Source: Basidiobolus meristosporus CBS 931.73
Taxonomy: Eukaryota; Fungi; Basidiobolomycota
Assembly (NCBI GenBank): GCA_002104905.1
Contig: MCFE01000247.1
Coordinates: 1 to 64,000, forward strand
Direction of reading: 5' to 3'
Length of the DNA: 64,000 nt
Shown here: in pieces, positions 9,690-35,949 of the stretch
Layout: every line of letters starts with the position of its first letter
Numbering within the stretch: position 1 is the stretch's first letter
Made by a program: the position numbers and the translations under genes
The notes under the pieces: generated by a model
What the model saw: the letters and a program-made list of their open reading frames with translations, nothing else
Told to the model about the DNA's origin: nothing
Database searches by the model: none

Positions 9690-11070
9690 CTGATGGATTC
9701 TAGTCCCTCTGACTTGTATACACTGCTTCTTTTTGTGTAAATTCAATTCTCATAAACATAGAAATTGGCCTACATTCAAGTGAAACCTGGTATTCCTTGG
9801 TAATGTTGTCTCAATAGCAATAACTTGCTTGTTATATCCAATCTAACCTTGGCTTGCTTACAAATACAATTCCTCATCTCTCAAATTGTTTCACAACCTC
9901 TAAGGAAACAATACAGCAGCTTTCTGTGGCTGGCCTTGATTGGTTTTGCAGCTTGGGCATGTTCTCACTAGCTTCCAAGTCTCATGTTTCATTCTGGGCT
10001 AATATGCTGAAGGTTTCACAAGCCTGTAGGTACCTTCAATTCTAGGATAACCATATTGATGGAGTAGCTTGTAAGTTAAATCCAGGTGAGCAAGATAGGG
10101 GCAATAGAGAATAGAGCCTCCATCAACAATTTGGTAGGCTGTTTCATCCTGTACTACCAGATTGCTGGCTTCATCCCAGACATTTGCCTTAATATCTTCA
10201 TCCACCTTATTAGGAATGGCATGACCATCAAAGTACTTTGGTGATAAGCTTGGCCATTCTGATTCATGTACCAGGTTGAGCTATGCAACTTGTTCTAGTC
10301 TTGATAAGATGTCAGCAACTGTATTTTTTCTCTCAGGACAGCGGACTATTGCCAAGTTGAATTGTTGAAATATTCACTTGATCTTGTCACTCTTCTGTAT
10401 AGTACCATCAGATTAAATTTATACCTGAGTAGAGTGTGTTCAATCTCCGCAGTGCACTTGACTCCTTTAATGCAGCATTGAGATGTCTTCAAGCAGTGTA
10501 ATATGCTAAGAATCTTATTATCATCTGCTTGATAGTTTTCTACTGCTGAGCTCAGTTTCTTTAAATACAAAAGCAACAGGTCATTCCTTTTCCTCATGTC
10601 CTTGGCTCAGTACTCCATCAATTCCATAATCTGAAGCATCTCTGCAAAGAGTAAATTCTTTTCTGAAGTTAGGTATTCTTAGCTTAGCAGCTTGGCAAGC
10701 TCACTCTTCAACATCTGAAAGACAGCCTCTCAGGCCATGTTAGATTTCAAGGTCTTGTCTCTCTTGAGGATATTAGTCAAAGGGGCTGCAAGACTTACAA
10801 AGACTTGACAAATCTCCAATGACAGGAAGCTAGTCCAATAAACAATCTGAGATCTGAGATGCTATGCGCTGTTTCAGATTCTTGATACCTTCCACTTTCT
10901 TTGGGCCTAAGGTCTCTATTGTGCCAGTCACTATGTGTCTCAGATATTCAACATGTTCCTTGAAAAATTCACACTTTGCTAACTTGCCATATAGCTTGTT
11001 CTCTCTGGCTTCTTGGCAGCTATGCAGGTAGGATGGTGTTTTGGACCCATATATCAGACAGACTACCATA
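9690..11070 (-). pseudogene. Ty3/gypsy pol fragment (RT C-terminus, RNase H, integrase zinc-binding region), no LTRs
   Basis: KLAKCEFFKEHVEYLRHIV (RT), KKLSSAVENYQADDNKILSI (RNase H), then HQYGYPRIEGTYRLVK followed by VRTCPSCK (HHCC region) in gypsy RT-RH-IN order. Confidence 0.85.
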
Positions 11071-13349: not shown

Positions 13350-13410
13350 CAGGAACACCATACAGTCTAAGAAGCTCAATTGTATTCAAAGATAATGCCC
13401 AGAGAAATAC

Positions 13411-15571
13411 CCCCTATAAAAATTTATTGTAATGATCCAGTCAAAAGGCAGTCACAAAGCTCAAGTCCTGTGACTAAGAGGTATTGATCCTGTCATGACA
13501 CTGTCCAAAGGCTGTTGAAGAATAATTGCACCTCAGATTTTGCAAGAAAATTTTTCATTACTACAATGTAGAAGTGGCTTTGGACTGGTTCCCTGCCAAT
13601 TTACTCACTTTCAGATCCCAGCCACTCTATCACCTCCTATTCTTGTGTACATTAATTGGCTGTTACCATGTTTCACACTCCTTACTCCTTGACTCAACTA
13701 TTTCACTTACTTTTCATGCTTATAAGTTGATTTATTTCCATTGAAACTTCAGTTGTACCACAATTGCCAATTTTATTGTCCTACACAAGTCCCTATACCC
13801 TACACTAACATCAAGCCCCACCCCACACTCAACAAGTAACTCCATTAAAATCCACCATTTAACAAGTATTTCTGCTGTAACACTCTAGTTCCACAACTTT
13901 AGCAGGAACCCAATGGCTTTATGCCACTGTTCATTCACAGGTTCCCACACACCCTGGTCTTCAGCCAGCACTGCAAGGTCTAGCATCTCATCTGCCAGTC
14001 TTTGCAATAAATCCTTGCAATATTCCAGTGCATTTTCTTGAGCACTGCTCTTGAAGAAGTGCTGCAACCTCTGGGTGTGCCTATTAATGCTCCAAAATTC
14101 CCCTGAAGGCATTGCAATAGTCTTTCAAGCTCTGTACTTTATAGCCTTGTCAGTCAGTGGGATCTCCACTCTGTCAACAATGGAGGATATTGAGGCTGTG
14201 GTAGACAGATTGCCATTTGCTGCAAACTCATCTACCTTGATGGAGTGTAGCTCAACTGGCTGCGCTTCCAACTCTTGTGAAGATGGCTATTTTCTTGTTG
14301 GTAATTCTTCTTGGCTGTGATGGGATTCAGTCTGTTCTGGGCTTGCGGCATTAAATGGCAAGAACTGCAGTTTTTTTGCATGCCTCCCTGTCTCAGACTT
14401 GGGTAGACATTTTTACCTTTACCTTTACCTTTATCACTGCCGGGTCTTTCACTGCTACTTTGTCTGAGTGCTTCTTTTAAAGTACTATGTTTTCTCCCTG
14501 ATAAATTCTGCTCTGACTCATCTGTTTTGGCCAGCTTGTCCCTTGCTGGTACTCTTCTGGCAACCTGACATTTCTTTTCTGCTTGTTTTGAACTCTCAAC
14601 TGTAGTTGTGACATGCTCCTATAAAAGCTGCTGGTTTTTATCACTGCAAGGTCCTTCATTACTACTTTGATTCAGTGCTTCTTAAGTGATACTGCGCTTT
14701 TTCCTTGATAAATGTTGTGCTGGTGCATCCATGTCTGCCTGCTTGTCCCCAGTTGACACTCTTCCAGCTACCTGACATCTCTTTGATGCTTGTCTAGAGC
14801 TTTTGGTCTTGCTTGTCACCAGCTCTTGAGGAAGCTGCTGGTTTTTGGCAATGGCACCCTTGTTCATTTGCATTTGGTAGCTTCTGCTATTCTTCAGATT
14901 TCTCTGTGCCACTGCTTCTATCCTATCAGCCACTGCACCTAATTGCTTCATTAATACTTTGGTATGAGCTGACAACATACTTGCTAATATGGGTGGTGGT
15001 GATGTTATGACAGCCTCTTGATAGTCTTCAACTGAGGGTACTGCATTTGCCACATTCTGATCTGCCTGAGCATAAAGGTCAGCTTGTGGCTCCACAGAGG
15101 TTCTCAATTGCCTATCTGACAGAGAGCCTGAGGAGCTGCATTAGTCCTTCAATAGGCACACTGTCCACAGGGCCTTTCTTGGATGTAGCCCTGCTTGCTG
15201 CACAGAGTGTCAAAGCAAGCTGTGGTGCAACCGTTCTTCTGTTGCTTTCAACAGTGGGGATTGGTTGGGAACCAGACAACTTGGCTTTATTTTTTGACTG
15301 CATACATATGGAAGTGAGTCAAACCAAAGGGGAAATAGTGTTACATATATGTGTGTATATGGTGCCACAACTTTATTTATAACACTTACTATAGCAGGTC
15401 ATCATTAACTCTTACATTCATGTAGGGACAATGTCTCAAACACAAAACTGTCATAGGCTGACATGAGTATTGACCAAAAAGTGATATAATAGCACTACCT
15501 TGTTGAAGATCAAACATTTTGCCCCATAGACAAGACTACTTTGACTCAACACCATAAGAGAAGGAAAAAAG
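13411..15571 (+). mobile_element. CCCTA-type En/Spm copy H1, left arm (left terminus, ORF2 on the minus strand, transposase 5' start)
   Basis: Terminus cccctataaaaatttattg preceded by TAC; ORF2 relics at 13885-14112, 14682-15107 and 15112-15303. Confidence 0.85.
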
Positions 15572-18500
15572 TGTTGAAATATTGGCTATTTGGTATCATT
15601 TTGCAGCTAAAAATTTACTTAACAATTCTGGACTAGTCTTGGTCACTGTGAGGCTAGTTTACAGCTCTAACTTTGCCACTTTCTTCAGATCTATGATCTT
15701 ATGATTATTCCCCTATAGTCAGGATCAAATTAGCACTAATACTAACTATTAGACTTGTTCCGTTGGATAGTACCACATTGAGCCATGTGTGCCAAATGAT
15801 GCCATAGTGTGCCAGAGAGGCCATGTGAGCCTCTACCTGGCCACAGAGTGTGAAACATAGCTCCGCATCTTCATGCAAAGCAGCCCCTGTGTTTCACCCA
15901 TTGTGTTGGAGAAAATCCATTTTTTGACCTTTTTTTTGGATCAATGTTGTGCAGGATGTGTTAGAGCACAAGCAGATTGAAGATAGGCATCTGGTACTCA
16001 ATATCTATGGCACTCTGAATCTAGCTCCTGTAGCTTGTATCATGTCACAAAAATGAAAGGCACTATTTTGGTCCACTGGTACTATCTGGCACTATAAGTG
16101 CTTTGTATAGATCTTACTTTAGGGCCAATATTTAAATATAGTGCCAGATAGTACCAGTGGACTAAGATAGTGCCATTCATTTTTGTGACATGATACAAGC
16201 TACAGGAGCTAGATTCAGAGTGCCATAGATATTGAGTACCAGATGCATATCTTCAGTTCTCCTGTGCTCTTACAAATCCTGAGATACATTGATCCACAAA
16301 AAATGGTCAAAAAATGGATTTTCTCCTGCACAATGGGTGAAACACAGGGGCTGCTTTACATGAAGATGCAGAGCTATGTTTCACACTCTGTGGCCAAGTA
16401 TAGGCTCACTTGACCTCTCTGGCACACTATGGCATCATTTGGCACTCATGGCTCAATGTGGCACTATCCAACGGAACAAATCTATTATGTACTAAACCTG
16501 ACACTGTTACTGAATGCTCCTGAATATTGAGAAACCCTCCTTACTTAGTGCTACAGCTGTATTACTTATACAAAGGTATAAATACTGAGCTTCTTTATTA
16601 ATAAACAACAGTTCAACTATTATTACTATTTCTTGATAAGCTCCTTATATCCAAATCACTTCTTAAATTGCAACAGGTTATGAGCCCCAATTGCCTTGAT
16701 CTATTTAAAGACGACATCTACCAGTAAACAGAATAACACAAACATCTTCCCTGTAAAGGAGAGGTTTGATGGAAAAAACTACAGACTTTGGAGAATCAAG
16801 ATGCAGATCCACCTTGAGGAAAGGAAGCTTTGGAATATAGCAACAGGAAAAGAAGTTGAGCCCAAAGGAACAGCAGAAGAAGTGGAGAAGTTTCAAGAGA
16901 AGGAGAGAGAGGCCTTTAATGCCATATGTATCAATGTGCAAGATTCCTTCATTGGACAAATCTATGCTTCAGATACTGCCAAAGCAGCATGGGAATCCTT
17001 AGAGAAGATCTTTAGGGCAAAGTCAGTATCAAGCAAGCTTTATTTGAAACAAAAGTTCTTCAACATGAGGAAGAAGCCAGATGATGACATGCTGCAACTC
17101 ATTACCAAAATGGAGACACTTGCAGAAGAACTTTACTGTATTAATGCTGGTGTAGATGATGAAGAAACAATACTCTGCCTGCTTTGCAGCCTACCAGACA
17201 AGTATGAGCCACTCATACTTTCTTTTGAAAACAGAGAAGACAACTTGACTTTAGACTACTTCAAAGGAAGACTTCTCCATGAAGAACTCAGACGTAATGT
17301 TCAAGCAGAGAAAATCAAAGATAATGCTTTATTCAGTTCAGAAAGGCACTCAGAAAAGAAGGGAAAACAACAAAACCAAAGAAAACCTGGTTGCTGCAAC
17401 TATTGTAAAAAGTCAGGACACTGGGCAAGAGAATGCAAGAAGAAACAAACAGACAAAAAACAGAAATTAGAGCAGGCAAACCATATAACTACTGATGAAC
17501 AGTTATTTGTAACCATACAAGAGAGTGCAAGTGACCAAAGTAATGAGTGGTATATTTACTCTGGAGCATCACAGCATATCTGTGGTATAAAGGAGTGGTT
17601 CAGCCACTTAAAAACTATTCCCATAAGAAAGGTTTATCTGGGAGATAACTCTGCTCTGAAAGCTACCGCAAGTGGGTCTATACAACTAAATATGATCAAT
17701 AGCTCAGGGGCAACTACAGCAAGACTCACTGATGTACTCTATGTACCTGGAATAGCTAAGAACTTACTCTCAATCAGTAAAGCAACTACTCAGGGACTGA
17801 AATTTGTTTTTACTAATATGAGCTGCCAATATTGAGTGTGAATGGACAAAAATCAGCTTTGGGAATCAGAGAACATAATATATACAAGTTACAATGCAAG
17901 ATCATTGTACCTGAGTATGTCAACATTGCTGAAACTGATGAAACCAACTGAGATACATGGCATAGAAGGCTAGGACACATTGGGGAACAGAAAATGAGCC
18001 AATTGGTGAAAAATCAACTGGTTTTGGGCCTTTAATACCCAATTCCAATTAAATTGAATGTTTGTAAGGGATGTTCATATGGCAAACAAGCTAGGCAAAG
18101 TTTCAAGAGCTCAGAAGGCATCAATACCACAAAAATATTGGCTATTGTACACTCCAACATATGTGGCCCCATGGGAACACTGTACTTTGGAGCCAAGAGA
18201 TACTTTATGACATTTATTGATGACAAAACAAGATATACATGAGTACTTCCTCAAAACAAAGGATGAAGCTTTAGAGACGTTGAAGCACTTCAAGAACATG
18301 GCAGAAACACAAACTGGGTGTAAATTGAAGGTACTATGAAGTGAAAATGGAGGAGAATGCTGCTCAAATGAGATTGCAAAATACTGCTTGTTTATTAGTA
18401 TACTTAAACAGACCACAGTTCATCATATCTCCATGGCAATATGGAGTAGCAGAACATGCAAATAGAACAATAGTAGAGATGGGAAGATCTATGCTACATG

Positions 18501-20981
18501 ATAAGGGAATGGACTACAAGTTCTGGGCTGAATCTGTTGCTACTGCATTATACATCAGGAACAGATGCCCAACAACAGCACTACTTGATTCTACACCCTT
18601 TAAAGCATATACAGGCAAAAAACCAGATCTCCAGCACCTCAACATCTTTGGCAGTGATGTTTTTTATCACATCCCTGACAAAAAAGGTTCAAAGTTGGAA
18701 CCAAAGTGTAGGAAAGAGATCTTTCTTGGGTATTGTGAAGATACTAAAGGGTATAGAGTGTATAATGGCAGAATTCAGAAGCTGATCAAGAGCAGGGACA
18801 TTGTATTTGAGGAAAATTCAGATCAGAAAGCCACAGAAATCATCCGCCAGCTGCCTGATGATTCAATCAACACTAATGAAGAAGATATGTACCTAATCCA
18901 GCCAGATACGGAAGATACTTCTACCAGTTCCAGATCAGAACAGATTATCCCAGTTAGGAGTTCTACCAGGATAAGAAATGACCCTGGATCCTGGTGGTAG
19001 ACATCTAATGATCATGAAGAAGCTTATCTTGCCTTATGTGCCAAACCTCAGAATCTGCATCAGGCAATGCAAAGTCCAGATGCTGCTATGTGGCAACAAG
19101 CCATGCAGGAGTAGTACCAATCACTGATCAAGGTAAAAATGTGGGAACTGGTAGATTTACCAAATTGGAGAAAGCCAATAGGATGTAGATGAGTCTACAA
19201 GATCAAGATAACCTCAAATGGTGGCGTTGATAAGTACAAGGTTAGATTGGTGGCTAAAGGCTATTCCCAGATCCAGTGACTAGACTTTAAGGAAACATTT
19301 GCTCCGGTTGCCAAGTTTGACTCCATTAGGACAGTCCTAGCCTTGGCAGCTGTACACAGTCTAGATCTACACCAAATGGACATCAAAACAGCCTTTGTAA
19401 ATGGGGATTTGCAAGAAACTATATATATGGAGCAACCAGAAGGCTTTACCAATACAAAAGTATCCCATAAGGTGTGCAAACTTAGAAAATTGTTGTATGG
19501 GCTTAAGCAGGCACCTAGAGCATGGTATAACAAGATTGACACATATCTAGGGGAAATTGCCTTTTCTTATAGCACCGCAGATCATAGTATATATGTGAAA
19601 CAGCTCAAAAAGGGTGTGATCATCCTAGTGCTTTATGTGGACAACCTAATTATAGCTTCAAGTGACCAAGAGGCACTTATACAGATGAAATCAGATCTCT
19701 TCAGCAAGTTTGAGATGAAAGATCTTGGAAAATTGAGCTATTTTCTTGGGATTGAGGTCAAATTTGACATAGCTACACAGAAAATTGTGCTGAATCAGTC
19801 TAAGTACATCAGGGACATTCTTAGATGCTTCAAAATGGAAAATTGCAAAGCTGCAGCTACCCCCATGGACAATAACCTGAAATTAAGCAAATCTCAGCCA
19901 GTTATAGATGAAAACGGCTCAAATATAGAACAAAACTTTTCTTATCAGTCAATGGTTGTAAGCCTAATGTACTTAATGGTATCTACACGTCCAGATATTG
20001 CAGTGGCAGTTGGAATAGTCAGTCAATTCATGCAGAATTATGGATCAGATCGAGTTGTAGCAGTTAAGTGATCTTAAGATATCTACAAGGAACCATAAAT
20101 ATGGTACTGGAATACTCCGGAGCAGCTAATAGGCAAAATTTTGATGGTTATAGTGATTCAGATTTGGGTAGGGATCTGATTGACAGACATTCTACCACAG
20201 GCTATGTATTTCTTTATGCTGGTGCAGCTATTACTTGGAATTGCAAGAAACAACCAACTGTGGCCCTATCTACAACTGAAGCAGAATATATGGCTGAATG
20301 TCAAGCAACTAAGGAGGCTATATGGCTACAAAAATTATTCAAAGACTTAGGTTTTAATTCAGATGAACCAACATGTATTTACAAGGATAATCAAAGCTGT
20401 ATTTCATTAGCTAGAAGTCCTATTAATCATGCCAGAACTAAGCACATTGATATACAGCATCACTTTGTGAGGGAAGCTGTGGAAAAAAACGTAGTAGAGT
20501 TAGTGTACTGCCCAACTAACAAAATGGTGGCAGATATACTGACAAAACCACTAGCTAGGCCACAATTTGAGAATCTCAGTTAGGATTAAGAAACTATTTA
20601 CTTGAGGGGGAGTGTTGAAATATTGGACTATTTGGTATCATTCTGCAGCTAAAAATTTACTTAACAATTCTGGACTAGTCTTGGTCACGGTGGGACTAAT
20701 TTACAGCTCTAACTTTGCCACTTTCTTCAGATCTATGATCTTAGGATTATTCCCCTATAGTCAGGATCAAATTAGCACTAATACTAACTATTATGTACTA
20801 AACCTGAAACTGTTACAGAATGCTCCTGAATATTGAGAAACCCTCCTTACTTAGTTCTACAGCTGTATTACTTCTACAAAGGTATAAATACAGAGCTTCT
20901 TTATTGATAAACAACAGTTGAACTATTATCACTATTTCTTGATAAATTCCTTATATCCAAAATACTTCTTAAGTTGCAACA
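15572..20981 (+). mobile_element. Copia family B element B1, full length but disabled: 5' LTR 15572-16675 (contains MITE), PBS 16676-16687, gag-pol relics 16696-20583, PPT, 3' LTR 20613-20981
   Basis: TG...CA LTRs of about 369 bp, PBS ggttatgagccc, PPT gagggggag. Motifs CNYCKKSGHWAREC, WYIYSGAS, IVHSNICG, LYVDN, YSDSD and HIDIQHHFVRE; several stops and frameshifts. Confidence 0.97.
15751..16483. mobile_element. 733 bp foldback MITE (arms about 346 bp, spacer about 40 bp) inside the B1 5' LTR
   Basis: 15751-16096 is the near-exact reverse complement of 16137-16483. Termini agacttgttccgttggatag / ctatccaacggaacaaatct; flanked by ATT (or TATTA). The empty site aactattatgtac is seen in the 3' LTR at about 20787-20799. 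Confidence 0.95.
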
Positions 20982-22206
20982 CTACCTGCATCCACTGCTT
21001 GATGAAGTTTGTAGGCTTTGCAGCAGAATACTTCTAAATAGCTGTCTTATCAAAGCACATATTACTCTCTGCATTGGAGATACCCCAGCAATCAGCAAGA
21101 TGGCCCACTTCCTGGGCTCAATGAGCATTATTTCTGTAAAATGTGTGAGATCCAGAGGATTCACTCCATATCTAACACATGTTATTATTATCCAAGTACC
21201 AACACTAAGAACATATTCTTCCTAAACAGGGAACATTCAAAAGTCAGCATGCAATGAAGCAAAGTTGGTAAACTATAAGCCATTGGCTGGAATACAGAAT
21301 CCATTGTAAATCAGAAATACTCAAGATGGAGGATAACTGCTGGAGCAAAATCTTTCCACTGGGAGCAGTGCATTTGCTTTTCAACAATATCCAGATAATA
21401 ATGACCAAGTTGTACCTGCAGCATCTCAAGTTGAATGAGCCCTTCAAGATATGGGAGGAATTTGAAAGAATTGGCAAGGTATTACAGAGTATCTGCTACC
21501 CAAAGTACTTCTCATGGGCTCCAATCAATATTCATAAGCATATGCAACAACAAAAGTGCAAGAACTGGATGAACTGAGTATGAGTTGATTCAAGTGATCT
21601 TTTAAAGGCATGTCTACCAAGAGTTCATTGAAAGCATTGGGAGTCATACATTGACATTGTAGGAGTATTTATCCAGAAGTAGATCTCAGGTGCCAACAAA
21701 CCTACAGGCCATAGTTTTTTTTTATTCAAACTATATGTGGAATATGTATGATAGTAGTAAGTTAGCAAATAGAGAGGGGTAATTTTAAAGTGGAATATAT
21801 ATAATACCATTTGGTAAATAGGTATGGTGGCACTATACAGAACCAGCTGTAGGCTAACCTACTGTCAATAAAATGCCAGCAGAGGCTTTCTCTAGGGCTG
21901 TTAGAGCACTGTCCAGTTTCCTGCCATAAAAGGCAGTTGAATGTACTGATAGGTCTGCTCAAAAAAAGTAAAGAGCAGATTAAGAATGTTGAATGCCATG
22001 CAATTCTTGTCAAATTGCTACTTAAACACTGTCAAGTTTTTTACTTTATTTGGCAGTAAAATCAACAAAACACAATGACAATCCCTTGATAGAATTGTGT
22101 GGAGAGTCAATAATTACAAGTTTCTAGTATTATAATGGACTCGTTATGGTATCCTGACTGCTGATCTGGATTGGAGCCACCTGTGGAAAATTATTTTTCA
22201 TAGGTC
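20982..22206 (+). mobile_element. CCCTA-type copy H2, right arm (transposase 3' relic with deletion, right terminus), lying in the inverted segment
   Basis: AHITLCIGDTPAISKMAHFLG, IFPLGAVHLLFNNI; terminus ttatttttcataggtc followed by TTG. Confidence 0.85.
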
Positions 22207-23488
22207 TTGATGGGAACCCCATAGCTTTATGCCATTGATCATTTGCTGGTTGCCATACATCCTGGTCTTTTGCCAGCACTGAAAGGTCTAGCAACTCATC
22301 TGTCAGTCTTTTCAATAGATCCTTGCAGTGTTCAGGTGCATTCCCTTGAGCACTGCCCTCCAAGAAGTGCAGCAACTTTTTGCTATGTCTGTTATTACCC
22401 CAAAACTCCACCACTGGCATTACAATAGTCTTTTTAGTTCTTGAAAGTGTTGATTTGTCTGTCAGTGGATGCTTTACTCTTTCTATAATGGAGGACATTG
22501 AGGCAGTGGTGGAAAGATTGCCTATTGCTGAAAGCTCATATGCCTCACTGCAGTGAAGCACAGCTGGCTGCACCTCCAACTGTTGCAATGACAGGTGTTT
22601 TCTTGTTAGTGGTTCTGCTTGGCTATGATGCAATTCCACCAGTTCCTGGCTTAGAGCATTAGCAGGCAAGAATTGCAGCTTTTCTCCCAAGCTTCCCTGT
22701 TTCTGGCTAGGGTAGACCTTTTTTCTTCTACATCTTCCTTTACTACTGCCAGGTCTTCCACTGTTACTATGTCAGAGTACTTCTTGTATTGAACTGCAAT
22801 TCCTTCTTGCTAAAAACTGCACTAATGCATCTGTTTCTGCCTTCTTGTTCCTTATCAGTACTCTTTGCGCAACCTGCCATTTCTTTGCCACTTGAATTAA
22901 GCTTTGAGCCCTGATTGTTGTAGGCTCCTGAGGAAGCAACTGGTTTTGTCACTACCAGGTCCTTCACTGCTACTGCCCCAAAGTGCTTCTTGTAGGTAAC
23001 CTTACCTTTTACTTGATATATAGTGTGCTGGGCATCCATGTTACCTGCTTGTCTCATTACTGCCACTTTTCCAGCTACCTGACATTCCTTTGATGCTTGT
23101 TTAGAGCTTTTAGTCCTGCTTGTAGCATTTGGTTAAGGAAGTTGCTGGTTTTTAGCCATTAAACAGTTGCTGTTCTGCCTTCAATAGTTTCTGATATTCT
23201 TGATATACCTGCTTAGCATACCAATGCTGGCCCAAAATCTGTTTACTTGTTTAAATCCAGAATAATGCTCATGGAACTGGTCAAGTGTATACTGCTTAGC
23301 CTTGTGAGCTTGATACTCCCATGGAATGCTGGCCTTAAGGTAATGGCATGCTGTACCTCTTGTAGCCTCAAGAATAATAGCCCACTTCTCATCATTGCAC
23401 TTAACAACTTCATAGATCTTCAAAGTCATTTGATTACTGGGCTTTGGTATCAACACCAGAGTCTCTCCCTCCCATGCAGTGATAGGTA
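22207..23488 (-). mobile_element. CCCTA-type copy H0, segment 2 (ORF2 region), in the inverted segment
   Basis: ORF2 relics 22130-22690 and 23181-23456. Read on the minus strand it continues the sequence broken at 13410 (gaaatac|ctatcac) and leads into 40951. Confidence 0.8.
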
Positions 23489-26400
23489 CTCTATGAAAAA
23501 TAACTTGGTCCTGTGGGTGCTCTAATCCAGATCAGCCATCAGGATCCTATATAGTGACCATCCTAATACCAGCAGCTTGGAATTAGTGACCCTCTTAACA
23601 ATCTTATGACAGGATCACAACGGTGTTTTGCTAACTTTACAAACAAATAAGGGGATAAAACTTGACAAGATTTGATTAGTGCTGTGACAGTAATTGCATG
23701 GTATTGTTGCAGTCTTTTAGGAATCTCTAACTATTTTAAATGGATCCAACCAGCCAGGACATCCAATTGCCTTATATGGAAAGAAACTTGACATTATGTT
23801 GACAGTCTCACAGCAAGACTCTGATAGCATTATAATGGCAGTATGATGGCCTACCACTGGTTCTGTATGATGCTACTGTCCCAATTTACCAAATGGTATT
23901 TCCTTTTTCTACCTCCCCTTGTGCAATCCATATTTTCCACTGTAGAATCACCTTTCTTTATTTGCTTACCCACTACTACTTTGGGTAATTAATATATATT
24001 TTGAATCCAAAAAAACTATGGCCTCCTGCATACCAACCTCTACAAGCATACATACCTGCCACAATTGATATACTTCTATCACCTCAACTATACAACTTTT
24101 TAGTGTGATACTTGCAAAGTTGCCATATACCTTGTACTGCTGTTAACATATACATCTTGGAAACATGTGCTAGGCTGTTGCCACTTCTGCCATGAATACC
24201 TCCTGAATATCCACAAAGAACTTATGGGTATTTAGCCAATATGTTTCTTCTCCCTGTTGGACTCTGGTCCCCCATATAGATGTGATCTGGCTTTTGTTTG
24301 TGTGAATTCTGTATTTAATGGTGAAGGGTTTGCTTGTGACCAAGAAAAATCCGGCATACCTTGTTAGAGTTTTCCTAATAAAGTTGGTTGCTGGTTGCAC
24401 CCAACCCTACTTTACATTCCTTAGCTGATTACCCCCTCATTGGGGCTACTTAGCTCTTGATGCCATAGGTATAGGTATCTCCATGTGCACATTTGTCCTC
24501 AGTATTTTCCAACTCTTCCTGGCTGTCCTCCATGTGCCAACTTGTCACATCAATGTCAGACTTGTAGGTAATATACTTGATGAGACTGGGATATGGTAGT
24601 ACCAGCAACTTGACTTGTCTTCCTATCTCCCCACACATCCACACCATAGGAGACTCCCAAAAGGTGAAGCAAGGCCCAATATATTCCACACATCATGCAA
24701 GATGGGGTAGAGAATGGATACAGTAGTGGCAGAGATCTGCACATTCAGCTTGATGTTTGTAGTATAGCCCCTCGAATCCTTTCACAAACTCTTTGCACAA
24801 CAGCTGTAGATATGTCAAGTTGGCATTGGTGATCTGCTTCTAGATAAATATTCCTACAATGTCCACATATGACTCCCCATGCTTCCAGTGTATGCTTGGT
24901 AGGAATAGCTTCAGAATGCCACTCAAATAAATACATATCCAGCTCATCCAGTCTTTGCATTTGTATTGTTGCATATGCATATGAATATTAATTGGAGCCC
25001 ATGAGAAGTACTTAGGGTAGCAGATGCTCTGTAATACCTTACCAATTCTTTCAAATTTCTCCCATATCACAAAGGGCTCATTTAGCTTAATATGCCCTAT
25101 ATACAACTTGGTCATCAGTATAGAGATATTGTTGAAAGGCAAATGCATTGCTCCCAGTGGAAAGCTTTTGCTCCAACAGATACACTCTATCTTTTGTATC
25201 TCTGGTTTCTGATTGATTCCATATTCCAGCCAATGGTTTATAGCTTGCCAACTTTGCTGCAATTGCCTGCTGATTTCTGTACGTTCTCTCTGTGAAAGAT
25301 GATGTTCTTAGTGCTGGTGTTTGGGTAATAAATATGTTTGTGAGCTATAAAGTAAATCTCCTGGATCTTGCACATTCAACAGCAATACTCCCCATTGTGG
25401 CTAGAAAATCATGCTTTCTTGCTGATGGCTGCGGTATCTTCAAGGCAGATAATAATATGAGCATTATATGACAGCCATCAATTTTGACCCTGCTGGAAAG
25501 CACACAAAAATCTTCCAGCAATGGATACAGGTAGCTATCCAGGTTGGATGTTGACTTATTTCCAGATACCAATGAGACTACCATCAGATCATTACTCTGA
25601 TACTGAAAGATGGGTGGCAGATTCAGATTGATGAGAATCAGTAATCAGCAGAATTTGCTGGTAGAGTATTGTTGAATGAGAATCCATCAAGTGCTAAGGC
25701 AAAGGCATGGTTATGCATACCTTCAAAGTAGCCCTTGCTTCTTAGCTGTTTGTAATGTTTGCCATCAAATATATTGGATATGTTTGCACTTGATTTATAC
25801 TGAGCAAGGTACTGAATGCTTTCCAATATTTGTTAGACTGCATCAGCTTCCTCAGACAGGGTATGTCCAGAACATATCTGGAGTGTAAACAATACTTTCC
25901 CTCAATGGTGGTGGATTCCTGACAGTTTGGGCACGTTGCAATGGTAGCTTTTTTGGATGTGAATGCCACACAACTGTTCACACATGCTGGAATCAGGAGA
26001 GTGTCTGGATCATACATTGCCAGCCACATGATGGTTGTCCACTTGTACCATGTACATGGTAAGTTGCATCCCAGTATGATTTTGGCAAGAAGTAGTAATA
26101 AGTCCTTAAAGCCCCTATTACTGATATTAGTGGAAACGTGCCACTTCTCTAGCCACAACATTACATCATTTACCAGTAGATGTATCACTGGGCTCACTTA
26201 GTTCCAATAGGTGTTTTCTTGTTGCACATAGGGATTTGACCAGGCTCATATGTGGTACTGTTGTTAGGGAAGATAGGCTCAATATCCATCAATGAACCTT
26301 CTTTGTAAGAGCTATCGCTCTACATGCCATATTCAGAAGGCTGATGTGAGCCTAAAGGCATCACAAACTCACCTGACTCAGTTTGCACAAGGTGACAAAG

Positions 26401-26583
26401 ATGGCCAGGTGCCAATATAGAAGTATCAACTGGCCAGCAAGATAATGTTGGTACAGTAGTGGCCACTGAATGGTCAAATATGACTTGCGCGGCAAAACAC
26501 TGGCCATGATCCATGTAATACTTCCTATGCTGTCTGTGTGCTTCATGGTTGAGAGGGTTGCCACAATAGCCACATGGTCTTTT
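23489..26583 (-). mobile_element. CCCTA-type copy H1, right arm with the best-preserved En/Spm (Tnp2/Transposase_21-like) transposase pseudogene (about 24170-26583) and right terminus
   Basis: Motifs DPDTLLIPACVNSCVAFT-x-CPNC, IFDGKHYK, FALALDGFS, VVSLVSG-x-NLDSYLYPLLEDF, FPLGAMHLPFNNI, CKDWMSW and IGPCFTFWESPM-x-CGEIGRQVK; terminus ctctatgaaaaata at 23489. Confidence 0.88.
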
Positions 26584-29500
26584 TGTTGCAACTTAAGAAG
26601 TGATTTGGATACAAGGAACTGATCAAGAAATAGTGATAATAGTTGAACTGTTGTTCACTCATAAAGAGGATCTGTGTGTATACCTTTGTTGAAGCAATAC
26701 AGCTGTAGCACTAAGTAAGGAGGGTTTCTCAATATTCAGTAGCATTCAGTAACAGTTTCAGCATTAGTACATAATTGTTAGTATTAGAGCTAATTTGATC
26801 CTGACTATAGGGGAATAATCCTAAGATCATAGATCTGAAGAAAGTGGCAAAGTTAGAGCTGTAAATTAGTCCCACAGTGACCAAGACTAGTCCAGAATTG
26901 TTAAGTAAATTTTTAGCTGCAGAATGATACCAAATAGTCCAATATTTCAACACTCCCCCTCAAGTAAATAGTTTCTTAATCCTAACTGAGATTCTCAAAT
27001 TGTGGCCTAGCTAGTGGTTTTGTCAATATATCTGCCACCATTTTGTTAGTTGGGCAGTACACTAACTCTACTACTTTATTTTCCACAGCTTCCCTCACAA
27101 AGTGATGCTGTATATCAATGTGCTTAGTTCTGGCATGATTAATAGGATTTCTAGCTAATGAAATACAGCTTTGATTATCCTTGTAAATACATGTTGGTTC
27201 ATTTGGATTAAAACCTAAGTCTTTGAATAATTTTTGTAGCCATATAGCCTCCTTAGTTGCTTGACATGCAGCCATATATTCTGCTTCAGTTGTAGATAGG
27301 GCCACAGTTGATTGTTTCTTGCAATTCCAAGTAATAGCTGCACCAGCATAAAGAAATACAAAGCCTGTGGTTGAATGTCTGTCAATCAGATCCCTACCCC
27401 AATCTGAATCACTATAACCATCAAATTTTTGCCTATTAGCTTCTCCAAAGTATTCCAGTACCATATTTATGGTACCTTGTAGATATCTTAAAATCACTTA
27501 ACTGCTGCAATTTGATCTGATCCATAATTCTGCATGAATTGACTGACTATTCCAACTGCCACTGCAATATCTGGACATGTAGACACCATCAAGTACATTA
27601 GGCTACCAACCATTGATTGATAGGGAACGTTTTGTCCTATATTTGAGCCATTTTCATCTATAACTGGCTGAGATTTGCTTAATTTCAGGTTATTGTCCAT
27701 GGGGGTAGCTGCAGGTTTGTAATTTTCCATTTTGAAGCATCTAAGAATGTCCCTGATGTACTTAGACTGATTCAGCACAATTATCTGTGTAGCTATGTCA
27801 AATTTGACCTCAATCCCAAGAAAATAGCTCCATTTTCCAAGATCTTTCATCTCAAACTTACTGAAGAGATCTGATTTCATCTGTATAAGTGCCTCTTGGT
27901 CACTTGAAGCTATAATTAGGTTGTCCACATAAAGAACTAGGATGATCACACCCTTTTTGAGCTGTTTCACATATATACTGTGATCTGCGGTGCTGTAAGA
28001 GAACCCAATTTCCCCTAGATATGTGCCAATCTTGTTATACCATGCTCTAGATGCCTGCTTAAGCCCATACAACAATTTTTAAGTTTGCACACCTTATGGG
28101 ATACTTTTGTATCGGTAAAGCCTTCTGGTTGCTCCATATATATAGTTTCTTGCAAATCCTCATTTAGAAAGGCTGTTTTGATATCCATTTGGTGTAGATC
28201 TAGACTGTGTACAGCTGCCAAGGCTAGAATGTCCTAATGGAGTTAAACTTGGCAACCGGAGCAAATATTTCCTTAAAGTCTAGTCACTGGATCTGGGAAT
28301 AGCCTTTAGCCACCAATCTAGCCTTGTACTTATCAACAGCACCATTTGAGGTTATCTTGATCTTGTAGACCCATCTACATCCTATTGGCTTTCTCCCATT
28401 TGGTAAATCTACCAGTCCCCATGTTTTTGCCTTGATCAGTGATTGGTACTCCTCCTGCATGGCTTGTTGCCACTTAGTACCATCTGGACTTTGCATTGCC
28501 TGTTGCAGATTCTGAGGTTTGGCACATAAGGCCAGATAAGCTTCTTCATGATCATTGGATATCTGCTACCAGGATCCAGTGGTGTTTCATATTCTGGTAG
28601 AGCTGCTAACTGGGATAATCTGTTCTGATCTGGAACTGGTGGAAGTATCTTCCATATCTGGCTGGATTTGGTATATATCTTCTTCATTTGTGTTGATTAC
28701 ATCTTCAGGCAGCTGGCCAATGATTACTGCGGCTTTCTGATCTGAATTCTCCTCAAATACAATGTTTTTACTCTTGATCAGCTTCTGAATTCTGCCATTA
28801 TACACTCTATACCCTTTAGTATCTTCACAATACCCAAGAAAGATCTCTTTCCTACACTTTGGCTCCAACTTTGAACCTTTTTTGTCAGGGATGTGATAAA
28901 AAACATCACTGCCAAAGATGTTGAGGTGCTGGAGATCTGGTTTTTTGCCTGTATATGCTTCAAAGGGTGTAGAATCAAGTAGCGCTGTTGTTGGGCTTCT
29001 GTTCCTGATGTATAATGTGGTAGCAACAGATTCAGCCCAGAACTTGTAGTCCATTCCCTTATCATGTAGCATAGATCTTCCCATCTCTACTATTGTTCTA
29101 TTTGCATGTTCTGCTACTCCATATTGCCATGGAGATATGATGAACTGTGGTCTGTTGAAGTATACCAATAGACAAGCAGTATTTTGCAATCTCATTTGAG
29201 CAGCATTCTCCTCCATTTTCACTTCATAGTACCTTCAATTTACACCAAGTTTGTGTTTCTGCCATGTTCTTGAAGTGCTTCAACGTCTCTAAAGCTTCAT
29301 CCTTTGTTTTGAGGAAGTACTCATGTATATCTTGTTTTGTCATCAATAAATGTCATAAAGTATCTCTTGGCTCCAAAGTACAGTATTCTCATGGGGCCAC
29401 ATATGTTGGAGTGTACAATAGCCAATATTTTTGTGGTATTGATGCCTTCTGAGCTCTTGAAACTTTGCCTAGCTTGTTTGCCATATGAACATCCCGTACA

Positions 29501-31429
29501 AATATTCAACTTGATTGTAATTGAGTATTTATGGCCTAAAACAAGCTGATTTTTTACCAAATGGCTCATTTTCTGTTCCCCAATGTGTCCTAGCCTCCTA
29601 TGCTGCGTCTCCTAGTTGGTTTCATCAGTTTCAGCAATGTTGACATACTCAGATACAATGATCTTGCATTGTAACTTGTATATATTATGTTCTCTGATTC
29701 CCAAAGCTAATTTTTGTCCATTCACACTCAATATTGAGCAGCTCATCTTAGTAAAAACAAATTTCAGTCTCTGAGCAGTTGCTTTACTGATTGAGAGTAA
29801 GTTCTTAGCTATTCCAGGTACATAGAGTACGTCAGTGAGACATGCTGTAGTTGCCCCTAAGCTATTGCCCATATTTAGTTGTATAGACCCACTTGCGGTA
29901 GCTTCCAGAGCAGAGTTATCTCCCAGATAAACCTTTCTTATGGTAATAGTTTTTAAGTGGCTGAGCCACTCCTTTATACCACAGATATGCTGTGATGCTC
30001 CAGAGTCAATATACCACTCATTTTTTGGTTACTTGCACTCTCTTGTACAGTTACAAATAACTGTTCATCAGTAGTTATATGGTTTGCCTGCTCTGGTTTC
30101 TGTTTTTTGTCTGCTTGTTTCTTCTTGCATTCTCTTGCCCAGTGTCCTGGCTTTTTACAATAGTTGCAGCAACCAGGTTTTCTTTGGTTTTGTTGTTTTC
30201 CCTTCTTTTCTGAGTGCCTTTCTGAACTGAATAAAGCATTATCTTTGATTTTCTCTGCTTGATCATTACGTCTGAGTTCTTCATGGAGAAGTCTTCCTTT
30301 GAAGTAGTCTAAAGTCAAGTTGTCTTCTCTGTTTTCAAAAGAAAGTATGAGTGGCTCATACTTGTCTGGTAGGCTGCAAAGCAGACAGAGTATTGTTTCT
30401 TCATCATCTACACCAGCATAATACTGTAAAGTTCTTCTGCAAGTGTCTCCATTTTGGTAATGAATTGCAGCATGTCATCATCTGGCTTCTTCCTCATGTT
30501 GAAGAACTTTTGTTTCAAATAAAGCTTGCTTGATACTGACTTTGCCCTAAAGATCTTCTCTAAGGATTCCCATGCTGCTTTGGCAGTATCTGAGGCATGG
30601 ATTTGTCCAATGAAGGAATCTTGCACATTGATACATATGGCATTAAAGGCCTTTCTCTCCTTCTCTTGAAACTTCTCTACTTCTTCTGCTGTTCCTTTGG
30701 GCTCAACTTCTTTTCCTGTTACTATATTCCAAAGCTTCCTTTCCTCAAGGTGGATCTGCATCTTGATTCTCCAAAGTCTGTAGTTCTTTCCATCAAACCT
30801 CTCCTTTACAGGGAAGATGTTTGTGTTGTTCTGTTTACTGGTAGAAGTCATCTTTAGAATGGATTAAGGCAATTGGGGCTCATAACCTGTTGCAATTTAA
30901 GAAGTGATTTGGATATAAGGAACTTATCAAGAAATAGTGATAATAGTTGAACTGTTGTTTATTAATAAAGAAGCTCAGTATTTATACCTTTGTAGAAAGG
31001 AATACAGATGTGGAACTAAGAAAGGAGGGTTTCTCAATACTCAGGAGTATTCTGTAACAGCTTCAAGGTTAGTACATACTGTTGTAAAAATTCGTATTTT
31101 CCACCTAAATATTCACCTAACTTAGTCACTTAGATCATTACCTTCAAATCCTAGAGAATACTGACCAAATCCCTTGTCGGGATTTACTTAGAATATTTTC
31201 ACCAAAATACCAGGTACCCAGAACATGAAAATTCTCAAAGTTGTCCAAACAGCCCCAAACTTTGCACACATGTTCTTGGGACCTTCCTTAACCTATTCTA
31301 CGTGTTTGTAATGCCAAGACCAGGTAAAAGTATAAATACTACTTTTACATTCAATAAATCATTAAGTGAAAACCACATAATCTACTTGTTCTCCAAATCA
31401 CTTCCAATATCTCCAAGACTCTTACAACA

Positions 31430-31441
31430 GGTTATGAGCCC
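31430..31441 (+). other. Primer-binding site GGTTATGAGCCC (initiator tRNA-Met anticodon arm)
   Basis: Immediately follows the 5' LTR and is complementary to GGGCUCAUAACC of yeast-type tRNAi-Met; the same site occurs at 16676, 30876-30887 (-) and 55066-55077 (-). Confidence 0.9.
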
Positions 31442-34400
31442 CGAGCTGTCACTCTCTGCAATGTCTACTACTGCTATTACTGGAATTTTTCCCTCTGCTG
31501 AAAAGTTGGATGGATCTAACTACCAAGTGTGGAAGGTGAAGATGAAGATGCTGCTACAAGAAAGAGGCCTTTGGGATATTGTCATGGGAGAAGAATGCCC
31601 TCCTAAAAACATGGGAGAGGAAGCCTTAAAGTACCAGAAGAAAGAACAAAGTGCCTTTAACTGCATTTGCCTTAATGTCAAGGACAAATTGCTAATTCAA
31701 TGCTCAAGAGCAAAAACGGCAAAGAATGCCTGGAAGGCATTAGAAGACACCTACCAGTCATGTTCAGCTGCCAAGAAAATGTATCTGAGAAGAAAATTCT
31801 TTACTACAAAGATGCTGCCAGGAGAAGAAATGAAAAATCTAATTAACAGAATTACCCTGCTGGTAGATGAGATGGAATCTGTGGGCGTACCAACTACTGA
31901 TGAGGATGTGATAGTTACCATCCTGAATAGCCTGACAGACAAGTTTCAGGGCCTTGTATCAGCCCTAGAGTCCAGAACTGAAGATTTGACCTTAAATTAC
32001 GTATATGGAAGGCTCCTGGATGAAGAATTAAGAAAATCAAGCGCCAATAAGAAGGAAGAAGAAAATGCTTTAATAAGCAATGATAACCAACAAAGGAGGT
32101 ACCCAAGACCCTACAAAGGCAACAGCAACCTGTTTTGTAACTACTGCAAAAGGAAAGGACACACATCAGACCGGTGTTTCAAAAAGAAAGATTATCAGCA
32201 AAAGAAGCCTGAATATGGAAATGCTGCAACAACTGAAGATAGACTATTCATATCTGCACTAAATATGACCACAAACAAGGATTCTCAGACGTGGTATATT
32301 GACTCTGGAGCTTCTCACCACTTCACACACCAAAAAGAACTTTTTACCCAATATCAAGAAATTCCAATTAAGAAGGTTTTCATGGGTGACGATAGAACAC
32401 TTGATGCAGTGGGAGAAGGCACTATCCAAGTAAACCTTAGAAGCAGTGAAGGAAGCCATACACTGACCTTTAAAGAAGTACTCTATGTACCAGAAATAGC
32501 CAAGAACCTACTCTCTGTAAGCAAGGCCACAGCAGAAGGACTCAGTTTCAGTTTTAACAATTCTGGATGCAGGATCACTGATCAAAATGGTGCTCATATT
32601 GCTTCGGGCATCAGAGATCAGAATCTATACAAGTTGACTTATATTCCATCATATCTGGAAGCCAATATAAGTAACTTAAATGAAGAAATACCAATGCTTT
32701 GGCACAGGAGATTTGGGCACATCAATTTTGATTATTTGCGTAAAATGATCAAAGATCAGCTAATTTCTGGAGTGAAAATTGATCCCCCAGCTATTTTGGA
32801 GCACTGTGAAGCCTGCATATATGGGAAACAAGCCAGACAACCGTTCAAGAGCTCTGGGTTAATCAAAACTAAGAAAAAATTAGATCTAATTCACTCAGAT
32901 CTGTGTGGACCTATGCAAAATTTATCCTTAGGCGGGATGAAGTATTTAATCACTTTTATTGATGATTATACAAGATACACATGGGTCTACTTCATGGAGA
33001 GAAAGGAAGAAGCTCTGTCTAAGCTCAGGGAGTTTAAAGCCATGGTGGAGAGAGAAACTGGTGAAAAAATCAAGAAAATACGCTCTGACAATGGTGGAGA
33101 ATATACCTCAAAACTCTTCATCCACTTCTGCAAAATTCATGGGATAAAGCAAGAGACTACTGTACCATACTCCCCACAGCAAAATGGAGTAGCAGAACGA
33201 GCTAACAGATCAATAATTGATATGGCAAGATCTATGATCCATGATCAAAAATTATCCTATGATTTTTGGGCGGAATCAGTTGCCACTGCTGTATATCTTA
33301 CAAATAGGAGTTATAACAGAATACTTCGTGATTCTACTCCATTTGAAGCATGGTATGGATACAGACCAAGTGCAGAACATCTAAGAATATTTGGGTGTAC
33401 AGCATATGCCAAAAAACTGGCCGGAAATCAGTCAAAATTTGAGCCAAAAAGTGTAAAATGCATATTTTTGGGCTACTGCAATGAGAGTAAGGCATACAGA
33501 CTCTACAATACCAAAGCAAAGAAGCTGATCAAGTCCAGGGATGTGTTGTTTGATGAAAATTCAAAATTTTCACAAAAAATGACATCAGATGATGACGAAA
33601 ATTTGATCTCAAGTCCACCAATTGTCAGGATTGAATCAGAGCAAAACAATGAAAATTTTTTCACTCCAGAGGACTCTACAACCATGGTTCAGCCAGAATC
33701 AGTGCCCAGGAATATCCCAGAAGTGATCATTCCAGTATCAAATGCCCGGAGATCCAATCGGACAAGAAATAGCCCAAATTACTATATCAATGAGGGTACA
33801 AACTTAGCCTATGCCTATTCAGTCCATATTGATGAACCCCAGACTGTAAAAGAGGCCCTAAATAGCCCTCAGACGAAGTTTTGGAGATCTGCAATGACTG
33901 AGGAATATCAGGCCCTGATGGAAAATCAAACTTGGGACTTAGTCAAATTACCAATCAACCGAAAATCAATTGGATGCAGATGGGTCTTCAAGACAAAATA
34001 CAAGGCTGATGGTACAATTGAAAGATACAAAGCAAGACTTGTAGCCAAAGGATACTCTCAAACAAAAGGACTTGACTATACTGAGACCTTTGCACCGGTA
34101 GCCAAGTTTAATTCCATCAGATTAATATTGGCTATTGCAGCCAAATATAAGTTTTTTATTCATCAAATGGATGTAAAAACTGCATTTTTGAATGGAGAAC
34201 TTGATGAGGACGTGTATATGGACCAGCCTGATGGGTTTGTTGACCAAGATAACCCCCATTTGGTCTGCAAGCTTAAAAAGTCACTATATGGTCTCAAACA
34301 ATCACCGAGAGCCTGGAATTGCAAGATAGATTCTTATTTGGAATCTCTGAGTTTCAAAAGGAGTAATGCTGACTATAGTATATACTATAAGCCAGATAAA

Positions 34401-35405
34401 GCAAATCCAGTTCTATTAGCTCTATATGTGGATGATCTTATTATAGCCGCCAATAACCTAGAAACATTGGAAGAGACTAAATCCAGCCTATCTAAGGAGT
34501 TCAAGATGTCCAATCTAGGAGAACTTAGTTACTACTTAGGGATTAAGTTCTCCATAGACAGAAGTACCCAGACTATTACCCTAAGCCAATCCAAGTATAT
34601 TCAAGATATACTAAAGAAGTACCAAATGGAAGACTGTAAACCGGCAGCTACCCCAATGGAGACAAACCTTAACTTGGTCAAAACTCAACCAAATCAAGAG
34701 AGCTTGGTGCCATCTGAAAGCCCTGACTTTCCTTATCAATCTATGGTCGGCAGTCTGATGTATATCATGCTTGGAACACGTCCAGATATCTCATATTCAG
34801 TGGGAGTTGTCAGCCAACATAATCAGAATTATGGATCTGATCATATTGCAGCAGTTAAGCGGATTTTTAGATACCTAAAAGGAACTGCTGATATCTGCTT
34901 AAGATACACTTATAAGGATTCAGAACAGGATCTTGTGGGATACTCTGATGCTGATTGGGGACGAAATTTAGAAGACAGAAGATCCACCACAGGATACACC
35001 TTTCTTTACTGTCAAGGAGCAATTTCATGGAATTCAAGAAAGCAACCAACCGTAGCACTTTCTACTACAGAGGCAGAGTATATGGCAGCCTGTGAAGCTA
35101 CAAAAGAAGCAATGTGGTTAAGAAAGCTCTTTACAGATTTAGGCCTATGTCAAAAAACGCCTATTACTTTATTTCAAGATAATCAAGGATGTATACAATT
35201 AGGTAGAAATCCAACTTTTCATGCTAGAACCAAGCACATAGATATTAGACATCATTTCATACGTGAAGCTATAGAGAACAACTTAGTTAACTTAGTTTAC
35301 TGTCCTACAGATGAAATGATTGCAGACATATTTACCAAACCATTAGCTAGAGACAAGTTTGAATATCTTAGGTCAAAATTAGGACTAGTTAGTATGAACA
35401 TTTAG
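31434..35405 (+). CDS. Copia Gag-Pol polyprotein (Gag, zinc knuckle, aspartic protease, integrase, RT, RNase H), 1323 aa from ATG 31434 (alternative ATG 31461)
   Basis: CNYCKRKGHTSDRC, WYIDSGASHH, LWHRRFGH/CEAC, HSDLCG-RSDNGGEY-GVAERAN, HQMDVKTAFLNG, LYVDD, YSDADW, TKHIDIRHHFIRE. The listed 31302 start lies inside the LTR. Confidence 0.97.
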   Translation: MSPELSLSAMSTTAITGIFPSAEKLDGSNYQVWKVKMKMLLQERGLWDIVMGEECPPKNMGEEALKYQKKEQSAFNCICLNVKDKLLIQCSRAKTAKNAWKALEDTYQSCSAAKKMYLRRKFFTTKMLPGEEMKNLINRITLLVDEMESVGVPTTDEDVIVTILNSLTDKFQGLVSALESRTEDLTLNYVYGRLLDEELRKSSANKKEEENALISNDNQQRRYPRPYKGNSNLFCNYCKRKGHTSDRCFKKKDYQQKKPEYGNAATTEDRLFISALNMTTNKDSQTWYIDSGASHHFTHQKELFTQYQEIPIKKVFMGDDRTLDAVGEGTIQVNLRSSEGSHTLTFKEVLYVPEIAKNLLSVSKATAEGLSFSFNNSGCRITDQNGAHIASGIRDQNLYKLTYIPSYLEANISNLNEEIPMLWHRRFGHINFDYLRKMIKDQLISGVKIDPPAILEHCEACIYGKQARQPFKSSGLIKTKKKLDLIHSDLCGPMQNLSLGGMKYLITFIDDYTRYTWVYFMERKEEALSKLREFKAMVERETGEKIKKIRSDNGGEYTSKLFIHFCKIHGIKQETTVPYSPQQNGVAERANRSIIDMARSMIHDQKLSYDFWAESVATAVYLTNRSYNRILRDSTPFEAWYGYRPSAEHLRIFGCTAYAKKLAGNQSKFEPKSVKCIFLGYCNESKAYRLYNTKAKKLIKSRDVLFDENSKFSQKMTSDDDENLISSPPIVRIESEQNNENFFTPEDSTTMVQPESVPRNIPEVIIPVSNARRSNRTRNSPNYYINEGTNLAYAYSVHIDEPQTVKEALNSPQTKFWRSAMTEEYQALMENQTWDLVKLPINRKSIGCRWVFKTKYKADGTIERYKARLVAKGYSQTKGLDYTETFAPVAKFNSIRLILAIAAKYKFFIHQMDVKTAFLNGELDEDVYMDQPDGFVDQDNPHLVCKLKKSLYGLKQSPRAWNCKIDSYLESLSFKRSNADYSIYYKPDKANPVLLALYVDDLIIAANNLETLEETKSSLSKEFKMSNLGELSYYLGIKFSIDRSTQTITLSQSKYIQDILKKYQMEDCKPAATPMETNLNLVKTQPNQESLVPSESPDFPYQSMVGSLMYIMLGTRPDISYSVGVVSQHNQNYGSDHIAAVKRIFRYLKGTADICLRYTYKDSEQDLVGYSDADWGRNLEDRRSTTGYTFLYCQGAISWNSRKQPTVALSTTEAEYMAACEATKEAMWLRKLFTDLGLCQKTPITLFQDNQGCIQLGRNPTFHARTKHIDIRHHFIREAIENNLVNLVYCPTDEMIADIFTKPLARDKFEYLRSKLGLVSMNI

Positions 35406-35949
35406 CTGAGTGGGAGTGTTGTAAAAATTTGTATTTTCCACCTAAATATTCACCTAACTTAGTCACTTAGATCATTACCTTCAAATCCTAGAGAATACTG
35501 ACCAAATCCCTTGTCGGGATTTACTTAGAATATTTTCACCAAAATACCAGGTACCCAGAACATGAAAATTCTCAAAGTTGTCCAAACAGCCCCAAACTTT
35601 GCACACATGTTCTTGGGACCTTCCTTAACCTATTCTACGTGTTTGTAATGCCAAGACCAGGTAAAAGTATAAATACTACTTTTACATTCAATAAATCATT
35701 AAGTGAAAACCACATAATCTACTTGTTCTCCAAATCACTTCCAATATCTCCAAGACTCTTACAACACATACTAGTTAGTATTAGTGCTAATTTGATCCTG
35801 ACTATAGAGGAATAATCATAAGATCATAGATCTGAATAAAGTGGCAAAGTTAGAGCTGTAAACTAGTCCCACAGTGACCAAGACTAGTCCAGAATTGTTA
35901 AGTAAATTTTTAGCTGCAGAATGATACCAAATAGTCCAATACTTCAACA

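Follow-up and report, generated by a model that had tools for sequence, protein, structure and literature searches.

Exchanged target duplications at two inverted copia elements of Basidiobolus meristosporus: a probable retrotransposon-mediated inversion

The first 64,000 nt of contig MCFE01000247.1 from Basidiobolus meristosporus CBS 931.73 (assembly GCA_002104905.1; hereafter the window, forward strand) carry two old, complete Ty1/copia elements of one family, B1 and B2, which lie in opposite orientation within copies of an older repeat, H. Neither element is flanked by a matching target duplication of its own, but the flanks of one match those of the other crosswise. A first-pass annotation of this DNA had proposed that recombination between the two elements inverted the sequence between them. 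The anatomy of the locus is described here, followed by the evidence for such an inversion, which we regard as its likely history.

The copia pair and its host repeat

Self-comparison of the window, together with a reading of the junctions, places B1 at nt 15572–20981 on the forward strand and B2 at nt 26584–35949 on the reverse strand, so that inverted homologous copies bound the segment between them. Their long terminal repeats (LTRs) have the ends TGTTG...CAACA. The 5' LTR of B1 is split by an insertion (described below) into an initial 180 nt (TGTTG..., nt 15572–15751) and a final 188 nt (...CAACA, nt 16488–16675), while its 3' LTR is an uninterrupted 369 nt (nt 20613–20981). Directly after the 5' LTR stands GGTTATGAGCC, which can be read as the primer-binding site, and the 3' LTR is preceded by the purine tract GAGGGGGAG. 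The B1 internal region (nt 16676–20612) has broken copia frames for gag, protease, integrase and reverse transcriptase (RT), with Pfam matches to Retrotran_gag_2, Pol_BBD, SH3_retrovirus and RVT_2. On the opposite strand, B2 has a 369 nt 3' LTR (nt 26584–26952), an internal region whose frames are likewise broken (nt 26953–30887), and a 5' LTR divided into a final 187 nt (nt 30888–31074) and an initial 183 nt (nt 35767–35949). B1 and B2 are 95.36% identical over 4501 columns in the self-comparison; when the nested inserts, and only these, are skipped, 219 of 4678 columns differ (4.7%, or 95.3% identity).

Both elements lie within H, of which three copies, H0, H1 and H2, are present here in pieces. 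The left part of the oldest copy, H0, runs from about nt 9289 (an approximate limit) to nt 13410 on the reverse strand and ends with TAC (nt 13408–13410), the triplet duplicated by H1. The left part of H1, with the terminus CCCCTATAAAAAT, follows at nt 13411–15571 on the forward strand and ends with AAAAG (nt 15567–15571), which is the left duplication of a copia insertion here called X. Beyond B1 come three pieces that now lie inverted: the left part of H2 (nt 20982–22206, forward strand), which starts with CTACC (nt 20982–20986), has its terminus at nt 22206 and is followed by TTG (nt 22207–22209); the middle part of H0, between the H2 and H1 insertion sites (nt 22210–23485, forward strand); and the right part of H1 (nt 23489–26583, reverse strand), which has GTA (nt 23486–23488) as its duplication and ends with CTTTT (nt 26579–26583). 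On the far side of B2 lie the right part of H2 (nt 35950–40950, reverse strand), starting with TGTAG (nt 35950–35954), having its terminus at nt 40950 and followed by CAA (nt 40951–40953), and the right part of H0 (nt 40954–41108, reverse strand; the right limit is simply where the alignment ends). The second copia insertion, in H2, is here called Y.

A further copy, H3 (nt 46313–49530), is missing the family's initial ~1.5 kb and is adjoined by a piece of an H left end in inverted orientation (nt 46082–46311). In H0, similarity at first appeared to begin at nt 11015, exactly where the counterpart of site Y lies. We discard this coincidence, as a more sensitive comparison finds H-like sequence at nt 9289–9861, and the edge is no more than a locally diverged stretch.

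Exchanged duplications and continuity of the host repeat

B1 is preceded by AAAAG (nt 15567–15571) and followed by CTACC (nt 20982–20986). Read in its own orientation, B2 is preceded by CTACA (the reverse complement of TGTAG, nt 35950–35954) and followed by AAAAG (the reverse complement of CTTTT, nt 26579–26583). Within each element the two flanks agree at only 1 of 5 positions, but taken crosswise AAAAG/AAAAG agree at all five and CTACA/CTACC at four of five. From base composition, we roughly estimate the joint chance of these crosswise matches at ~2e-5; this is an estimate of our own and not the output of a tool. All eight short flanks listed in the first-pass annotation (AAAAG, CTACC, CTTTT and TGTAG around the copia elements; TAC, GTA, TTG and CAA around the H copies) lie exactly where it had placed them, and its crosswise pairing of the copia flanks holds.

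Joining the flanks crosswise restores the host repeat, as had also been claimed. For site X, sequence up to nt 15571 was joined to the reverse complement beginning at nt 26578, so that a single AAAAG was kept; for site Y, the reverse complement ending at nt 20982 was joined to the sequence from nt 35955. The site X join aligns with an uninterrupted paralogue, H3 (nt 47077–47817), over 803 columns at 76.0% identity and is gap-free at the junction. The site Y join aligns gap-free with H3 over 807 columns (77.4%) and with the right part of H1 (nt 25135–25930) over 812 columns (76.8%). The first-pass annotation had located the uninterrupted sites in H3 correctly (nt 47472–47477 and nt 48468–48495). 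As a control, the two flanks of B1 itself were joined, and here the alignment stops exactly at the junction. No filler bases, deletions or duplications occur at any of the four junctions.

The nested H copies display the same exchange at a second level. H1 starts at nt 13411 after TAC, while its other end, nt 23489 beside GTA, lies within the segment to be flipped; H2 ends at nt 40950 before CAA, and its other end, nt 22206 beside TTG, lies within that segment as well. Joining nt 13410 to the reverse complement from nt 23485, and the reverse complement ending at nt 22210 to nt 40951, gives sequences that align gap-free with other H copies, and the rejoined empty sites in H0 retain a single TAC and a single CAA. 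Both H1 and H2 were therefore inserted into an older copy, H0, the middle of which (nt 22210–23485) lies inverted. The duplications of H1 and H2, and the continuity of H0, are restored only by flipping nt 20982–26583, as the first-pass annotation had argued.

Reverse-complementing nt 20982–26583 in silico and removing the copia elements gives a rebuilt H1 of 5251 bp and a rebuilt H2 of 6221 bp, which are colinear end to end; after this de-inversion a single H1/H2 match of 2467 columns at 77% spans both copia insertion sites. The in silico check proposed with the original claim thus has the predicted outcome. As four junction pairs are repaired by one flip, chance cannot explain the arrangement.

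The nature of H is less plain than its continuity. The first-pass annotation had called it host transposase sequence. That it is a continuous host repeat is borne out by the joins, while the transposase label is weakly supported and is plausible for the neighbourhood of site Y, where the H1 piece at nt 25348–25644 (reverse strand), which spans the position homologous to that site, matches Transposase_21 (PF02992) with an E value of 1.7e-5 and 24.6 bits, below the curated cut-off of 28.6. By language-model features, 64 of the 100 named ESM Atlas clusters nearest to an H piece are PF02992. The other fifteen reading-frame pieces of H gave Pfam rows at chance level only, and an exhaustive HMMER search with a 151-aa H piece returned four weak matches and no useful families. 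Transposase_21 is the tnp2 family of CACTA/EnSpm elements, and a 3-bp target duplication fits that superfamily. H makes such duplications, TAC for H1 and CAA for H2, each checked against an uninterrupted paralogue. Its termini are short, inverted and of the type C(C/T)CTATGAAAAAT at both ends; because they do not read CACTA, H is filed as Transposase_21-like and not as a typical CACTA element. We call it a putative degenerate Transposase_21-like DNA transposon, on a weak signal.

Origin of the exchanged flanks

A crossover between two inverted copia insertions, which inverted between 5.6 and 20.4 kb, accounts for these observations, and we hold this explanation with good confidence. The course of events would have been as follows. 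H0, the old repeat resembling a DNA transposon, was present first, and H1 and H2, members of its family, would have landed in it in a tail-to-tail arrangement, with a 3-bp target duplication at either site. Next, two copia elements that were almost identical would have integrated, X into H1 on the forward strand and Y into H2 on the reverse strand, each with a 5-bp duplication, leaving X and Y as inverted repeats ~5.6 kb apart. A crossover between X and Y by homology, an intrachromatid case of non-allelic homologous recombination, would have turned round all DNA between the crossover points. The locus would since have read A-[X 5' part + Y 3' part]-inverted middle-[X 3' part + Y 5' part, reversed]-D, and B1 and B2 would both be chimeric. 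The crossover itself and its position are what we infer, together with the correspondence of the assembly to the living chromosome. The flipped DNA comprises at least nt 20982–26583 (5,602 bp) and at most nt 15572–35949 (20,378 bp); its size is given as a range because the flanks do not locate the crossover within the elements. The first-pass annotation had given the lower bound correctly, and the upper one is added here. Its proposal of homologous recombination between inverted copia copies is supported, in that one event accounts for four exchanged flank pairs spread over three levels of nesting (the copia sites X and Y, H1, and H2/H0).

Several points weigh against this reading. The duplication at site Y carries one mismatch. 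The ancestral order is derived from one assembly, and the uninterrupted targets are paralogues (H3 and H1 for sites X and Y; H2, H3 and H1 for the H1 and H2 sites), not an orthologous chromosome. Pairwise distances among the four LTRs are similar (5.2–8.9%) and give a star-like tree, so the chimerism test is without power: only 2 informative LTR sites favour the X/Y pairing (B1 5' with B2 3'), as compared with 0 for the pairing as assembled, which for its part speaks for the crossover, and 4 that set the 5' LTRs against the 3' LTRs, alongside 38 singletons. Finally, the listed public contigs are all shorter than 300 nt and none spans an element.

The last point bears on the possibility that the chromosome is still in its ancestral arrangement, with two unremarkable copia elements that each have their own duplication, and that the middle was joined in the wrong orientation across the inverted repeats during assembly. 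The four junctions between LTR and flank do not differ between the two orientations, so that the sequence alone cannot separate them. Public data comprise four runs from one study (possibly the source sample itself), available as contigs only; these were aligned to nt 15300–21200 at 98% likeness, ignoring joints with a side shorter than 31 nt. They are too short to phase elements that form a 5.4 kb repeat, and the one contig (86 nt) that bridges nt 15571|15572 covers a junction common to both orientations. However, the alignment of B1 with B2 contains 213 differing columns over 4.5 kb and no run of identity longer than 149 bp, and no central stretch is identical or looks collapsed, which indicates that the copies were resolved as distinct sequences. 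A false orientation would need two matched wrong joins, in a window that is free of N through harder repeats, such as LTRs of 99.7% identity in the element C (see below). An assembly flip is accordingly considered unlikely.

A genuine inversion could also have arisen from the same repeats by another route, such as template switching between the inverted copies in the course of replication, or breaks at the ends of the elements or close to them that were repaired by end-joining. The flanks of the end product would look alike, and the mosaic divergence of B1 and B2 (see below) suggests that the copies interacted in some unspecified manner. End-joining would have to fall precisely at both LTR termini and leave junctions without filler, deletion or duplication. 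Template switching, being likewise driven by homology, would be a version of the preferred explanation rather than a separate finding; as a distinct account, this is improbable. Still less credible is an aberrant transposition in which the ends of two copies act jointly as a hybrid element and insert at a new site. It is established that LTR retrotransposons integrate new complementary DNA and do not excise chromosomal copies, which makes the mechanism inapplicable here, and the two copies are 4.7% diverged, not identical. The similarity in flank pattern on which such an idea would draw is that produced by cut-and-paste transposons (PMC2775673).

Divergence, nested elements and comparison with known systems

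The inversion by crossover, preferred here, gains some support from traces of sequence exchange between the two elements. Along 300-column bins, the divergence between B1 and B2 varies from 1.7% to 9.3% (chi-square 76, p 4e-10), and remains uneven in the internal region alone (p 2e-6), forming a mosaic of ~2% and 6–10% blocks. GC content, CpG and codon position were tested as causes of this unevenness and none explains it. Substitutions fall 41/30/48 by codon position, and the codon differences comprise 36 synonymous and 72 non-synonymous changes, a near-neutral pattern judging from the codons. The near-even positions suggest that most of the divergence arose after both copies were dead; and as X and Y would have been nearly identical at insertion, no chimerism signal remains. 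When the two copies are paired by folding back, the two 5' LTRs face each other, and the mosaic, with the four sites that set 5' against 3' LTRs, fits gene conversion between the inverted copies. An alternative for the mosaic is ancestry from template switching in reverse transcription. Tentatively, B1 and B2 might be a recombinationally active inverted pair instead of a one-off fossil, in which case the mosaic and the four LTR sites would be the record of exchange that recurred, by gene conversion and perhaps by several flips. Inversions of small size mediated by copia would in that case regularly reshuffle the transposon islands of this genome and might be polymorphic between individuals, although we think this reading doubtful.

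The 5' LTRs of both elements have been interrupted by later insertions. In B1 this is a foldback insert of 731 bp (nt 15752–16482, strand not assigned), the arms of which are 89.7% complementary and which is bounded by the duplication TATTA (nt 15747–15751 and nt 16483–16487). Its 34-nt termini match nt 42352–42385 (88%), the start of an element at nt 42352–45736, and the insert is probably its non-autonomous derivative. The public runs X3 and X4, both very small, consist almost only of this insert region, besides three short pieces elsewhere. In B2 the interruption is C, a young element from a different copia family (nt 31080–35766, forward strand), with 350-nt LTRs that are 99.7% identical and a CATAC duplication on both sides, the first copy of which (nt 31075–31079) adjoins the final part of the B2 5' LTR. 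C retains an uninterrupted frame of 1367 aa (nt 31302–35405) with Pfam matches in copia order (Retrotran_gag_2, Pol_BBD, gag_pre-integrs, rve, SH3_retrovirus, RVT_2). LTRs with TG...CA ends, a 5-bp duplication, a purine tract and the gag-protease-integrase-RT order identify B1, B2 and C alike as Ty1/copia elements. In an attempt to find the same locus in another assembly, the nearest database relatives of the C polyprotein were only 40–45% identical. The targets of the two interruptions lie in the LTR 10-mer AACTA(T/G)TATG, TATTA for the foldback insert and GTATG for C (nt 31075–31079 / 35767–35771), and overlap by 3 bp. The chance of such an overlap is ~1 in 500, and the B LTR may thus contain an insertion hot spot.

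Within the window, the only other B-related copy is a solo LTR (nt 6700–7069), ~84% identical to the B LTRs and bounded by a perfect 5-bp duplication, TATTC; solo LTRs are the usual product of LTR-LTR recombination. The window as a whole is a dense nest of the C family. A second full copy (nt 50743–55419, reverse strand) is 93% identical to C and has a near-perfect duplication, AATTG/ATTTG, and fragments occur at nt 1–4480, nt 41827–42351 with nt 45737–45996, nt 49531–50743 and nt 55426–57213. C and this second copy form a further inverted pair, in this case without exchange of flanks. The end of the window (58–64 kb) is GC-richer and gene-like, and includes a reading frame (nt 61104–61538, reverse strand) with a WH2 actin-binding motif (E 3.5e-12).

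Both the mechanism and its diagnostic signature are already well known, and the present locus is a new instance that is unusually well documented, thanks to the survival of both reciprocal products and of two additional layers of nested duplications. According to published work, ectopic recombination is marked by chimeric copies that lie in opposite orientation and have exchanged their duplications (PMC2775673). It was described for inversions of Drosophila buzzatii (2z3 and others) mediated by Galileo, where, as here, inverted homologous transposons bound the segment, target duplications are exchanged, and the uninterrupted reference has a single target copy (PMC2775673). Galileo is a DNA transposon, whereas B1 and B2 are Ty1/copia LTR retrotransposons; its inversions are cytological, while the present one covers 5.6–20 kb inside a transposon nest; and the Galileo targets were read from non-inverted chromosomes, in place of which paralogous H copies were used here. 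The criteria for Galileo also include chimeric copies, for which the LTR sites of B1 and B2 (2 vs 0 vs 4) provide a powerless test.

Among LTR retrotransposons, homologous recombination between elements is known to leave intact copies whose duplications do not match, and gene conversion between LTRs has likewise been described (PMC7251063). Recombination of this kind in plants and yeast, which also yields solo LTRs, resembles the present case in leaving complete elements with non-matching flanks (PMC7251063). Those events mostly involve copies in direct orientation and delete DNA, whereas here the copies are inverted, nothing was lost, and both reciprocal products lie side by side.

Inverted copies with crosswise duplications around an inverted segment are also left by intramolecular replicative transposition of IS26, Tn3 and Mu. 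That route creates the second copy and one new duplication in the event itself. In the present case the two sites bear 5-bp duplications of the integrase type, each at its own position in a separate H copy, and LTR elements do not move by replicative transposition of DNA.

As no gene of the flipped segment is affected, no phenotypic consequence of the inversion is expected. Its interest lies mainly in the agreement of both reciprocal products, both copia target sites and two more layers of nested 3-bp duplications on one inversion, so that a single sequence suffices to place six insertion events and one rearrangement in order, which makes the locus a clean worked example. For annotation, it explains two complete copia elements that lack matching duplications, and dating B1 and B2 by their LTRs as they stand would pair the wrong LTRs. 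More generally, the locus contributes one data point for the view that small inversions can arise when retrotransposons in opposite orientation recombine ectopically.

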